Below are positions 15,346-28,928 of a stretch of 64,000 nt of DNA, one piece after another. The position numbers were made by a program, and so were the translations under genes. Numbering within the stretch: the stretch's first letter is position 1; every line of letters begins with the position of its first letter. The notes below the pieces were generated by a model. That model searched no databases. It saw nothing but the letters and a program-made list of their open reading frames with translations, and had not been told where the DNA came from. This DNA comes from Malacoraja senta (lineage: Eukaryota), in assembly GCA_038087875.1 (NCBI GenBank), contig CM075977.1, positions 17,112,001 to 17,176,000 of the forward strand. Direction: 5' to 3'.

Positions 15346-15824
15346 GAACATAGATTGCATTTTTGTTGTGCTTGAGGTGACATTTTTAATCAGCATGTGA
15401 AACTATCTCAGGATTAATTTGCAAGGGCTGAGATTGGAAATTTTCATTCCAAAATCCAGAGACTTTTCTTTCAAATGTGTATAAAATTTGATGCATATTT
15501 CCCTGATGATAGGATATAATTATTTTGTTGTGTTAAAGTGAAAGTTGTAGATTCTGTACAGTGAATCATCGTTACAACGAACCATAGGGGAGTGAATGGT
15601 GTTCGTTATTGCCGATTGTACGCTATAACCAAGTACGGTATTATTGTATGTAGTTGAAACAAAGAACTACAGGAGTAGTTCAAAAAGAACACAAAGTGCT
15701 GGAGTAACTCAGTGGGTCAAGCAGCATCTCTGAAGAACACTGATAGGTGACATTGTGACCTTTCTTCAGACTGATTCAGTCTGCTGAGCTACTCCAGCAC
15801 TTTGTGTCATCTCTATTATACTAA

Positions 15825-17874
15825 AAGCCCTGTCTCACGGTGCGAGTTGACCCACGAGGTACCCCGAGCGTAAGACTCGTGGTTGTGCACGAGATTCCAA
15901 GTGTATGATCAAGAGTTTAACCGAGTTCCCACGGGTATGACTCAAGATTGCCGTTAACTGTCATTTCTGCGATGTTCCAAGTTCGTCTCCCGAGTTAACA
16001 AGTTCCTTTCCCGAGTTACTCTTGAGCCAACCTTCAATGAAGGTCTGTTTTAATAAGCAACATCTCCATCCTGCGGCTTTGAGTTAAAGATAGAATTCAG
16101 CGCGGCCGCATTTATTGATGTGACCTACAAAGGGAAAATGTGCACCGTCCAATGCCAGAGCAGTTATACTGATGATTTGTGTGAAACACACATCACGTAG
16201 TTAGAAGACCAGCAGGCGGAGGTTTGCTATATTTTAATTGAATTTACTGCCAGCTCTACACACTGCGGGGAGACTGGAGATGAAATCTTTGAAAGTGCAG
16301 GGATGCACACATCAGATTGTTGGGAGACGGAGCTCAGTGTTCGCCTCCTGAGCTGCTTTGGTGCCCAGGTGTGAGTTGAGGTGGAGGGAGGTTGGGGGGG
16401 GGGGGGGTCAGGTTAAACTCACCCATTTGACAGAGGCAGAGGATTACGAGGATCCAGCAAAACTCGGACTGCATGGAGAGCCGAGACTGCCCCGCTGGTG
16501 GCCAACTTCCCCCTGTTGGCCACCAGCCGGCAGGAGCTGTGCATGGAGCCCGCCACCGGATTCGTGTCTGACTGCCTGGGCAGCCTGAGGGAGGCAGATG
16601 CACCCTGCCCGGGGAGAGGCCGCGGAGAGACTGCGGGGAGAGTACCTCACTCTGACTGTGATAGGGAGAGACAGAGGCGCACACACACACACACACACAC
16701 ACACACACACACACACACACAGTGTGGAGTTCCTCTGACTGTCTGACTGTGTGGGTGTGGGGGGTGGGACAGAGAGCGAGAGAGACACACACACACACAG
16801 GCAGCGTGGAGTACCTTTAACTGTGTGTGTGGGAGAGAGAGACAGAGGCAGACACACACACACAATGGGCAGTGTGTACCTCAGTCTCTGTGTGTGTGTG
16901 TGTAGGGGAGAGAGAGATACAGAGACAGTGTGGACCCCTGACTGTATGAAGGAGAGAGGGGGAGAGAGACAGAGAGAGAGAGGCACAGAGGCAGTGTGGT
17001 GTACTTCGGCGTGACTGTGGGGCAGAGAGAAAGAGCGCACAGGACCTCGGTCTATCTGTGTGTGTGGGAGGGAAGAGAGACTAAGCAGAATACATCGGTC
17101 TTATTGTGTGTGGGGGGAGAAAGAGAGAGGTGGTGGGGAGAAAGAGAGAGGTGGGGGGAAAGAGAGAAATGGGGGGAGACGTATATACACACAAAGCAGA
17201 GTTTTACTGTGTATGTGGGAGACACAGATGGACTTACCTCGGTCTTACTGTGTGTGGGAGAGGGGGAGAAAGAGACGTACACTCACAGAGGCAGAGTCTC
17301 TCAGCCTGTGTGAGAGGGAGGGAGGGAGAGAGACACACACACAAGGTGGATGTGAAATCTCACCTGCCTGTTTCAGTGACCCGCACCCGCTGCTAGTGAA
17401 TGAAGACACCCTCATCTGTCTCCCCCTCCTCTCCCTCCACTCTCCACCCTCTCTCCTCCACCCCCCCTCCCTCCCTCCTCCAACCCCCCACTCCCCCCCA
17501 ATTTGGAAATGTCATCCCATCACCTATTCCTTCTCTCCAGAGATGCTGCCTGCCCGCTGAGTTAAAGAGTTCCCACGGTAGACTCACGAGTCACTAAGGT
17601 AAACGCACGGGCCACTGCGTTCTTACAACGTGTTTAAATGTTTCAAATGTTAACCTCAAGAGTACATTTTACTCGTGGAAAAGTTTAAACATGTTTGAAT
17701 TTTTCCAAGAGTTAACAAGTGTCACGGGTACCTGCCGTTAGCGCCAAGAGTCGCTAAGTTGCGTCCACGAGTTCCAACGTTCCCGCTATGCTAATCGTAC
17801 GTGATTACCATGAGTTAAATTGGTTTTAAGCTCGGGGTACCTCGTGGGTCAGCTCGCACCGTGAGACAGGGGTT
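15825..17874. mobile_element. Non-autonomous TIR element E1 (PIF/Harbinger-like)
   Basis: 45-bp TIR aagccctgtctcacggtgcgagttgacccacgaggtaccccgagc (2 mismatches), TAA on both sides; internal (CA)n/(GA)n-rich tandem region 16650-17350. Confidence 0.85.
16434..16645 (+). pseudogene. Candidate captured exon of an unidentified host gene inside E1
   Basis: Branch-like ctcac plus ttgacAG acceptor; GC3-rich codons reading RQRITRIQQNSDCMESRDCP/LVANFPLLATSRQELCMEPATGFVSDCLGSLRE with one +1 shift. Protein not recognised. Confidence 0.35.
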
Positions 17875-18299
17875 TAAAGGGCCTGTCCCACTGTACGAGG
17901 TAATTCAAGAGTTTTCCCCTGATTCGAACTCGGAGAATGTCCGTAGCGGGTCCGTAGGTGTTTGTGGACAGTGATGGAAATGGGTTTTAGGAACTAGGGG
18001 TACTCTATGGTCCGTGAGGTTGAGGTTGGGAAGGAAGGGGGGGGGGGGGGGTTATGTGCGGTCATACCCATGTAAGAGTACAAGAATGCATCACTTGTTT
18101 ATTGTGTATTTATAATATAGTTTATTGTGTATTATATGTCNNNNNNNNNNNNNNNNNNNNNNNNNNNNNNNNNNNNNNNNNNNNNNNNNNNNNNNNNNNN
18201 NNNNNNNNNNNNNNNNNNNNNNNNNNNNNNNNNNNNNNNNNNNNNNNNNNNNNNNNNNNNNNNNNNNNNNNNNNNNNNTGCTTCGGTGAGGGAAGCAGG

Positions 18300-18500
18300 T
18301 CGATGATTGATCAAACGGCCCCTAGGAGACTGTGCCTGATTGGCCGCCAAGTCACCAGCACATTATGTGATTGGACACAATGCCCTTGGAGACAGCAGCT
18401 GATTGGACGGGAGGAGACCGATTTGTTGATTGGATGGGATTTTAAGGGAAGCTGGTCGGTGATTGGACGCAACCCCCTTAGAGACAGCAGTTGATTGCCC
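18300..18500. promoter_or_regulatory. Array of inverted CCAAT boxes (GATTGG) at ~32-bp spacing
   Basis: ATTGG at 18339, 18370, 18402, 18429, 18462; degenerate copies at 18306 and 18494. Confidence 0.55.
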
Positions 18501-26456: not shown

Positions 26457-26530
26457 CAGGGATCTCCAAACTATGGCCCGCGGGCCACATCCAGCCAGGC
26501 ACATGATTTTATCTGGCCCGCACCAAGCTC
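26457..26530 (+). mobile_element. hAT-Charlie-like left terminus (right end not found)
   Basis: cagggatctccaaactatggcccgcgggccacatccagcc, preceded by gtctagga (Charlie-like target site). Confidence 0.6.
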
Positions 26531-26735
26531 AGTGCAGAACGAAGCATGTGTCTGTTAGGCGTCGAGTCGATGCGAGTCAGGTAGCTGCTCTTAGTGTTTG
26601 TTACGGGGTAGGTCCCTCGAATTGTCGGAGCCGAGACATCACAGGGCCGCCGTGAAGAAGGGTGCAATGATAGGGGGGGGGGTTCGGCAGCGGTGGTCAG
26701 AATGGGTCGGCGGCGAGTTATAAAGTGAAATCGTT

Positions 26736-27445
26736 CCTCTCTGCCTCTCTCTTTCCTCTCTGCCTATCTCTCTCCTGTCTGCCTATCTCCTCTCTGCCTC
26801 TCTCTCTCCTCTCTGCCTCTCACCTCCCTGCCTCTCTCTCCTCTGCCTTTCCCTCTCCTCTCTGCCTCTCTCTTTACTCTCTGCCTATCCTCTCTGCCTC
26901 TGCCAGTCTCTGTCTCTGCCTCTCTCTTTCTCTGCCTCTCTCTCTCTCTGCCTCTCCTTTCTCTCCCTCTCTATCTGCCTCTCTCTCCTCTCTGCATCTC
27001 TCTCCTCTGCCTCTCTCCCTCTGCCTCTCTCTGCCTCTCTATCTGTCCCTCTCTCTGCCTCTATCTCTCTCTCTGCACTCTCTCTGCCCTCTCTCTGTCT
27101 GCCTCTCTCTCTCTGCCCCTCTCTCTCTGCCTCTCACTCTCAGCCCCCCTCCCTCTCTACCCCCCACTCCCTCTCTACCCCCACTCCCTCTCTACCACCA
27201 CTCCCTCTCTAACCCCCTCCCTCTCTAGCGAGTGATGAGTAATGGGACCTATGGGTGAGTGGTGGAGTATTGCGTTTGGGGACCAACCCTGCCATGTGAC
27301 GCCGTTCGCCTCCCCTATCCCTCACTCTCTACCCGCCCTCTCTCCCTCTCTACCCCCTACTCCCTACCTTTACCCTCCCTCTCTACCCCCCTCACCCTCT
27401 CCCTCTCTACCCCCTCCCTCTCTACCCCCCTCCCTCTCCCTCTCT
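26736..27445. repeat. CT-rich low-complexity / tandem repeat (ctctctgc, ctctaccccc units)
   Basis: Directly visible pyrimidine-rich repeats. Confidence 0.9.
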
Positions 27446-28928
27446 AGCTGCGCCTGCGAAGTTGGGGGCTATGCGTGAGTGGATAGGGCGGGGGATGGGG
27501 GAAAAGGAGCGAATTAATAATATTAATATAATATCAAGGGAGGGGGGTTAGTGTGTGTGTGTGTGTGTGATGCCGAATTCCGCCCCCCCCCCCAACCGTG
27601 CGTTGGTGTGATGGGACCCAACGGGTCCCACTTGGTCTAGTATCAACTTAAAACTAATTGGTGATGCTGCTGGTCTGCACCAGCGAGCCCTTCTTCACTG
27701 TTGACTTAGCTGTTGTTGCTGCTCACCTTGTGGCCCCGACAGGACGCACTTTCTTCAGGTTGCGGCTACCGACAGGATGCACCCGGTCACCGTGCGGCTC
27801 CCTCCCTTCTCACCCATTGCTTTGTCCATTCCACCGCCTCCTCCTCCTCCCCCCGCAGTCATCGATACTGTCCATGGTGGAGTATGTCGACGACTCCAGG
27901 GAAGAAGTAGGAGATAGCGGCAGTGGAAGGGGGAGGAGAGGCTGAGTGAACAAAGTGACAGGTCAACAGGAAGAAGCAGCAGCAGGTGGGAGGGGAGGGA
28001 GCTCCAGGGTGACTGAGCTTGTCCTGTCAGTGGTAGTGGCTGAAGAAATCGATGTCCCCATGGGGCTGCAACGTCAAACGGACGGTTCGGTGGGTGAAGA
28101 AGGGCTCACTGGTGTACCTTGCAACTTCCCGAGGCGGTGTCGGGAACCAGGGCCGGGATGACATCGGTAGGTCGATTCACTTTAACCAAACTACGTTATA
28201 AAGGGATTCGTTAAAATGAGAATTTATTGTACTGCCACTATCATTGTCTTTTGGCATCAGTGAACCACTGATTGTTGGTTGTTTCCCTTTTCCAACATTT
28301 TTGGTCAAAGTAATTGCAACAAAATTGATGTACTATTGGTACAAAAAGTAGGGAAGTAAAAAAAGAAGAATAAATGATGTTACTTTATACAGCATCTATA
28401 TTAAGTGTTGCTTCAGGGATTTCTCCTATCCCATCCAAATAAATAATGGGAAAGATTTCTTTCCCTTCTTTCAGGGCTTTTACAATCCTGAAAAAGCCCT
28501 TAAGAATTTCACAAAATGGAGAAAATCAGAAGTATTTGGATGTTGATGTTGCTGATCAGGTTGTATGGGGGATATAACATAAATATAAATTAATCCACAC
28601 CCTTTTGACCTAGTGTGGGGCTCACACAAAATTTGCTGCATTGTTTCCTGACACAGTGCACACCTGATGGCCAGTTTCGATTCAACACATGCACCACAGA
28701 TGGCCGACATTTTATCTTCTGTTAAACACAAGCGAAAATGTTTCCAATGTAAGCTCAGGCATCTGCACACACTGCTGCAGCAGTGGCACAGCTCATAATG
28801 CTTATTCAAGGCACTTCAAAGATGCCACACTGCACCAGCAATCTGTCCCCCAATAGGTCACTAGGATTGTTGAGGCACTACCCAGGGAAACAATCAGTGG
28901 CCCTGTGGAGAACTAATCTCTGTGCCTC

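Follow-up and report, generated by a model that had tools for sequence, protein, structure and literature searches.

A stack of six nested transposons beside a ZFPM2-like gene in the skate Malacoraja senta, two of which carry host gene fragments

Background

Can a series of transposon ends lying just downstream of a gene be read as a record of insertions one within another, and did the inserted elements bring pieces of host genes with them? These questions are raised by positions 15559-28229 of a 64,000-nucleotide stretch of skate (Malacoraja senta) DNA, hereafter the window, which corresponds to C1:17112001-17176000 of a 1.94-Gb assembly and which contains a ZFPM2-like gene upstream of this interval. 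A preliminary description made from the sequence had proposed a nested stack consisting of an outer Tigger-like element, a palindromic repeat, a Helitron, two adjacent elements with terminal inverted repeats (E1 and E2), a hAT element, a CR1-type long interspersed element (LINE) and a second hAT-like element. It had further proposed that gene capture by three superfamilies at this single locus pointed to widespread Pack-type activity in the lineage.

Six elements nested within one another

Six transposons appear to have been inserted one within another just 3' of the ZFPM2-like gene, a reading to which we assign a probability of about 85%. The order read from the window was an outer Tc1/mariner-type element, a Helitron, E2, a hAT element and a CR1 LINE, each within the one before, with E1 beside E2 within the Helitron. 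The boundaries given earlier for these six elements were exact to the base and the expected end signatures were present for each. In-silico removal of an inner element restored collinearity with other copies of the enclosing family, other copies with different flanks were found for every one of the six families, and the target-site signature typical of the superfamily was seen at every layer, both in the window and in other copies. Empty sites from other copies were available for the Helitron, hAT and CR1 insertions. The nesting is real. It came about by known mechanisms, of which it is a clear though ordinary outcome, and no new kind of element is involved. Family sizes below are counts of first-look candidates from genome-wide sequence searches, and the identity ranges of the layers were taken from the best 40 matches of each family.

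The outermost layer was a non-autonomous element occupying exactly 15559-28229, starting with CAGTGAATC and flanked by TA at 15557-15558 and 28230-28231. Its own sequence was a left arm (15559-15809, + strand) and a right arm with a long internal palindrome (27641-28229, + strand), which aligned together in other copies. Joining 15400-15809 in silico to 27641-28400 gave one contiguous match of ~860 bp to at least eight other copies, and a multiple alignment of the family recovered CAGTAAAYCCTCGTTATAACG-type ends (CAGT... terminal inverted repeats) and TA flanks across copies. The TA signature and the ends place the element in the Tc1/mariner superfamily, and the narrower label Tigger-like reflects resemblance of repeat sequence only. 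This family, for which positions 27641-28260 as the query gave 755 candidates, is old, its best-matching copies being 65-82% identical. Palindromic stretches at ~15690-15806 and ~27650-28150 had the same arrangement in other copies, and the palindromic repeat that had been listed as an insertion layer of its own belongs instead to the outer family sequence.

A short palindromic unit (CTGGAGTAACTCAGCGGG...CTTCTTCAGACTGA) recurred in the window at 15690-15806, 17506-17555, 18683-19026 and 24993-25190, within the outer element, E1 and the hAT element. It appears to be built into several transposon families.

Within the outer element was a non-autonomous Helitron (15810-27640, + strand), whose own sequence comprised 15810-15824 and 25601-27640. 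Its 5' end read TCTCTATTATAC and its 3' end consisted of a hairpin, GGGACCC-aac-GGGTCCC, at 27613-27629 followed by CTAG at 27637-27640; other copies kept this hairpin, that of L002 having a single substitution in its stem. The 5'-TC and 3'-CTRR ends were found in the window and at five other loci (L002, L003, L005, L008 and L009), where the 5' end TCTCTATTATACTAAAAC and the 3' hairpin with CTAG were set between unrelated flanks with an A preceding and a T following. In the window the element was likewise placed between an A (15809) and a T (27641) without a target duplication, and uninterrupted outer-family copies read ...GTGTCATTTCA... at this site where the window reads ...GTGTCA-Helitron-TATCA.... 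The Helitron 5' region gave 1,372 candidates. At L008 (G000:C11:3421656-3424974, locus position ~766-836) a 3' CTAG ran head to tail into a 5' end lacking its first bases, as expected of a tandem product of rolling-circle copying.

Coding relatives of the Helitron were also present in the genome. The Rep domain gave 112 matches, some of them in open frames as long as 1,766 codons, and one 1,110-codon frame included both the Rep (Helitron_like_N) and PIF1 helicase domains. The RepHel coding copies (L071-L075, for example G000:C3619:42000-51999) were 97-99% identical to one another, with many on small unplaced contigs, and lay near 3' hairpins that were related, not identical, to that of the window Helitron. 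This high mutual identity and the related hairpins suggest that autonomous Helitron relatives have recently been active.

Two PIF/Harbinger-type elements stood side by side within the Helitron. E1 (15825-17874) was a 2.05-kb non-autonomous element with ends of the form AAGCCCTGTCTCAC..., terminal inverted repeats of 53 nt and a TAA on either side (15822-15824 and 17875-17877). E2 (17878-25597), a miniature element with ends of the form AGGGCCTGTCCCAC... and a terminal inverted repeat of about 100 nt, had its own sequence at 17878-17968 and 25351-25597, was 330 bp long after removal of the hAT element and one duplication copy, and lay between TAA (17875-17877) and TTA (25598-25600). The E1 family comprised 2,400 candidates with best copies 93-96% identical, and the E2 family 2,240 candidates with best copies 85-91% identical. 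The 3-bp TAA/TTA duplication of E1 was perfect in seven of ten copies, the window copy counted, and that of E2 in eight of ten other copies, the window copy left out (one reads TCA). Both elements were non-coding and are assigned to PIF/Harbinger by this 3-bp TWA duplication.

Uninterrupted Helitron sequence read ...ATACTAAAACTC..., and the window reads ATAC-TAA-E1-TAA-E2-TTA-AACTC. By this comparison E1 and E2 used one and the same TAA, the third copy of which differs by one substitution.

E2 was in turn interrupted by a non-autonomous hAT element (17969-25350, + strand; ~3.7 kb without the CR1), and homology with other copies began at 17969 and ended at 25350. The window copy has the terminal repeat CAGTGATGGAAATGG at each of its ends. 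Among further copies, six have it on the left and three on both sides, and in a seventh the left-end repeat has one substitution, CAATG. The 8-bp duplication was perfect in L019 and L023 and matched at seven of eight positions in L022 and in the window, where the two copies (17961-17968 and 25351-25358) read TTTGTGGA and TTCGTGGA. The left copy represents a single C-to-T change at a CpG, since uninterrupted E2 copies read TTCGTGGA at this site, with one exception reading TTCGTGAA. The family was large (3,188 candidates, 84-95% identity) and all nine of the copies examined were collinear with the window through 18279-19392 and 23089-25350. The second hAT-like element that had been suspected, possibly at ~23586-24699, is thus family-wide hAT sequence and not a separate insertion, and the internal palindromes of the hAT element were similarly common to the family instead of being insertions at the window locus.

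The innermost layer was a CR1-type LINE (19393-23088, + strand) with GTCT at 19389-19392 and 23089-23092. It was missing from all nine of the other hAT copies, in which 19392 abuts 23089 with a 4-nt overlap, and the duplication is therefore GTCT. Pfam identified Lipase_GDSL_2 in the first open reading frame (ORF1, a GDSL esterase) and Exo_endo_phos and RVT_1 in the second (ORF2), the latter broken by stops, and the 3' tail ended in ...tctatgtttctgtgtttctatg, which consists of short repeats instead of poly(A). More than 10,000 candidates were found, the best being 97% identical. Skate repeats have been described as dominated by recently expanded LINEs (PMC10115646), and the copy number and identity of this CR1 family fit that published expansion.

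DPP3 fragment of the Helitron

The preliminary description had reported a DPP3 fragment in the Helitron and an amine-oxidase fragment together with a CCAAT array in the hAT element, and all three were present as claimed. The DPP3 fragment (26092-26460, + strand) was supported by the genome search, by Pfam and by an intact copy, L013, and was intronless and broken. The translation of L013 was free of stops, and its alignment with residues 292-466 of human DPP3 (E 1e-82) showed no break large enough to be an intron. By comparison, the window copy has lost ~140 bp of coding sequence at 26159/26160; it also has stop codons and, near 26316, a small deletion that shifts the frame. The 130-143 bp of other DPP3 copies missing at 26159/26160 had been considered as an intron, and this was rejected because Pfam reads through in frame in the intact copies, so that the gap is a coding deletion in the window copy.

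The fragment was not unique to the window. It gave 28 first-look candidates representing about 25 places, at least 14 of which had the Helitron 5' region directly upstream. The small number of places relative to the more than 1,000 Helitron 5' candidates shows that DPP3 is carried by a small cargo-bearing sub-family of a large Helitron family.

A further DPP3 copy was found on C1308 (L051, G000:C1308:21500-29500, ~3232-5378). It was also intronless, was longer (Pfam positions 141-518) and contained stop codons, and its 5' limit (Pfam model ~139-141) was common to the Helitron cargo. An 855-bp interruption of this copy was likewise rejected as an intron: it has a CGGT duplication and an (AGAGATT)n tail and is an inserted repeat. 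In vertebrates the stretch of DPP3 matching the cargo is spread over several exons, the human gene having about 18 exons; no description of DPP3 exon structure was found in the literature searched. Because the cargo lacks introns and has its 5' limit in common with the longer C1308 copy, itself intronless, it probably derives from a processed DPP3 copy, and hence first from an RNA intermediate, rather than from the gene itself. The C1308 copy is a possible donor.

How the processed sequence entered the Helitron is a separate matter. A 5'-truncated DPP3 complementary DNA (cDNA) could have been put into a Helitron copy by the LINE machinery, after which the Helitron kept transposing with the cDNA inside it. 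The intronless state of the cargo and its shared start with the C1308 copy would suit such an event as well, the Helitron copy at L052 contains a part of DPP3 lying further 3', which suggests a longer ancestral cargo, and the genome has highly active CR1 LINEs. Yet neither a poly(A) tail nor a duplication was seen beside the cargo in the copies examined, and no poly(A) tail followed the DPP3 sequence in L051 or L052. In addition, no homology to the window Helitron was detected within ~3 kb either side of the C1308 copy, which makes this a free-standing processed copy and a possible donor for capture at the DNA level. We therefore regard insertion by LINE machinery as a possible but rather doubtful route.

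Amine-oxidase fragment of the hAT element

The cargo of the hAT element was a copper amine oxidase fragment of about 100 codons, which the CR1 divides into an upstream half (19237-19392, + strand; human AOC1 residues 276-320, E 1e-5; Pfam Cu_amine_oxid) and a downstream half (23093-23243, + strand; AOC1 residues 322-374) whose frame differs from that of the upstream half in the window. The fragment and the CCAAT array were present in every hAT copy examined. About 100 scored hAT copies matched Pfam Cu_amine_oxid over ~3-113 at ~1e-24 per copy, many of them without stops, and two contigs, C4404 and C10, have longer amine-oxidase-like matches that may be host genes. The array (18300-18495, + strand) comprised five exact TGATTGG motifs (reverse CCAAT) in one orientation, 27-33 bp apart and spanning 18337-18460, with two degenerate copies. 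In six other hAT copies, four to five of the motifs were kept at this position, and the array may be what remains of a promoter or, alternatively, a series of repeats bound by the transposase. With host-gene-derived sequence between its ends and several copies with distinct duplications, the hAT element has the features of a Pack-TIR, that is, a terminal-inverted-repeat element of the Pack type.

Runs of N interrupt the window at three places. Gap 1 (18141-18278) lies within the hAT element and gap 2 (24141-24276) within a purine-rich simple repeat of the same element; they are 138 and 136 long and start exactly 6,000 bp apart. The third run is at 49504-49665. The regular spacing may mean that the sequence was masked on purpose rather than that these are true assembly gaps.

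The stack might instead be an assembly artefact in which repeats were misjoined, especially at the two gaps inside it, both of which lie within a high-copy repeat at an unusual exact spacing in an assembly that has duplicated contigs. Nine other hAT copies were compared across the gaps, the ninth being near the end of its fetched locus for gap 1. The two sides of gap 1 were collinear in eight other copies with order and orientation constant (57-100 nt between the flanks in the six copies measured), and those of gap 2 were collinear in at least five copies with variable spacing. Both gaps thus lie inside one hAT element and do not join unrelated loci. Neither of the two conditions under which the preliminary description would have been refuted, such a joining at the gaps and cargo confined to the window, was borne out. 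Furthermore, the correct superfamily target-site duplication at every junction would not be expected of chance misjoins, and an artefact is very improbable.

Scope of gene capture

Capture by three superfamilies, as originally proposed, held for two of them, since the DPP3 cargo of the Helitron and the amine-oxidase cargo of the hAT element recurred across copies. It was not supported for the third. The exon-like segment that had been noted in E1 had no credible protein match: the interior of E1 was low-complexity, three open frames searched for a gene fragment had no Pfam match, and there was a single weak match among 1.84 billion proteins. That match, of the 84-codon frame at 16417-16668, was to a 3,979-residue repeat-rich protein, over many repeats at 31-42% identity, and was judged to be due to chance. 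The broader proposal of widespread Pack-type activity goes beyond what one locus shows, and is nonetheless consistent with the RepHel copies being 97-99% identical.

That the gene-like pieces were gained locally after insertion, or are chance similarities that no transposon moved, found no supporting point and is next to negligible, given that the DPP3 and amine-oxidase segments recur, each in its own family, at numerous loci whose flanks differ (about 25 places and about 100 scored copies, respectively) and that the protein matches are strong.

Order and relative age of the insertions

The identity of each layer to its best-matching copies was 65-82% for the outer element, 77-91% for the Helitron, 85-91% for E2, 84-95% for the hAT element, 93-96% for E1 and 97% for the CR1, a gradient that is consistent with the nesting order, ranges from families of very different sizes (best 40 each) being only roughly comparable. 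This limited comparability weighs against the overall reading, as do two other points. Placing E1 after E2 depends on that rough identity comparison and on the shared TAA, of which the third copy reads TTA. Moreover, a Pfam scan of the assembly gave no clear multi-exon DPP3 gene.

The stack is best explained as dead transposons that accumulated at a single spot through six insertions, one after another. An old Tc1/mariner-type element entered at a TA, and a non-autonomous Helitron then entered it between an A and a T. The PIF/Harbinger-type E2 followed at a TAA 13 bp from the Helitron 5' end, the hAT element entered E2 at TTCGTGGA, and a young CR1 LINE entered the hAT element and split its amine-oxidase fragment. 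Lastly, E1 would have entered at the TAA copy flanking E2. The order of the first five steps is fixed by the nesting, and it is only for E1 that we infer when it arrived in relation to E2, the hAT element and the CR1. E1 probably arrived after E2, because its best copies are 93-96% identical as against 85-91% for those of E2.

The cargo is common to many copies and was therefore acquired by each family before its amplification and not locally, the gene pieces being passengers. The DPP3 and amine-oxidase fragments in the window are broken and hence presumably without function.

Genomic setting and copy counts

The ZFPM2-like gene upstream of the stack was recognised from an 819-codon open frame (11860-14319) with a ZFPM2-type CCHC zinc finger at its end (Pfam PF25445, E 1e-37). 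Exons were located on the + strand at 5283-5672 and 11860-14319, the last exon ending at 14319. An AATAAA at 15323-15328 is the likely poly(A) signal of this gene, and the start of the stack at 15559 lies ~230 bp beyond it, the distance previously reported. A search of Rfam over 15000-29500 returned nothing but sub-threshold hairpin look-alikes, none of them a match to hammerhead ribozymes.

Within 14330-15820 of the window, 64-72% of the sequence words were present in sequencing runs of about five other organisms, and close relatives with data therefore exist for this part. Several searches returned contig pairs with identical scores and coordinates (C2113 and C4:83.99 Mb; C4111 and C2:78.16 Mb; C5268 and C6088). 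These are probably duplicated haplotype contigs, and raw copy counts would be slightly inflated by them.

Comparison with known systems

Nested transposon clusters are known from maize intergenic regions, where the layers are long terminal repeat (LTR) retrotransposons. As in maize, younger elements in the skate stack lie within older ones and their order is legible from target-site duplications and divergence. In contrast, the skate stack consists of one LINE and, for the rest, of DNA transposons from four superfamilies.

Gene capture by Helitrons has been well documented, both in plants and in bats (PMC4778049). The window Helitron resembles the Helitrons of maize and of Myotis bats, including the reconstructed Helraiser (PMC4778049), in its TC...CTAG ends, in a hairpin ~11 nt from the 3' end and in insertion between A and T without a duplication. 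Other likenesses are the amplification of a cargo-bearing sub-family within a larger family and the head-to-tail tandem junction seen here at L008. It differs in that the host is a cartilaginous fish and in that its cargo is intronless, whereas the classic captures of genomic DNA include introns. No description of gene capture by Helitron or hAT elements in skates or sharks was found in the literature searched.

A survey of 100 animal genomes reported 370 Pack-TIRs, mostly hAT and Tc1/mariner, of which only four were multi-copy, with a worked example of three copies (Tan et al. 2021, PMC8277862). The skate hAT element is like these animal Pack-TIRs or Pack-hATs in being a non-autonomous hAT-type element with a host-gene-derived interior and copies with distinct 8-bp duplications. 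It is unlike them in that the family is found at thousands of candidate places and is older, its copies being 84-95% identical.

Conclusions

For six transposon families, this locus supplies reference copies and ends exact to the base, together with their target-site rules; the published account of the genome speaks only of a LINE expansion (PMC10115646). Mobilisation of gene fragments occurs in a cartilaginous fish by Helitrons as well as by hAT elements, and the hAT family greatly exceeds in copy number the multi-copy animal Pack-TIRs so far reported. The high hAT copy number and the recently active Helitrons are the points of note. As regards annotation, open frames resembling amine oxidases, of which this genome has thousands, and those resembling DPP3, of which it has dozens, are transposon cargo and not genes.

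A wider and more tentative view, which at present seems unlikely to hold in full, is that the skate genome contains a Helitron system which has been active of late and which acquires and disperses pieces of host genes again and again, in addition to a hAT family of thousands of copies with an amine-oxidase fragment and a promoter-like CCAAT array. If true, cartilaginous fish would be the second vertebrate case, after vesper bats, of large-scale shuffling of gene fragments by DNA transposons, and DPP3 would add a two-step route in which a processed RNA copy is followed by mobilisation by a Helitron.

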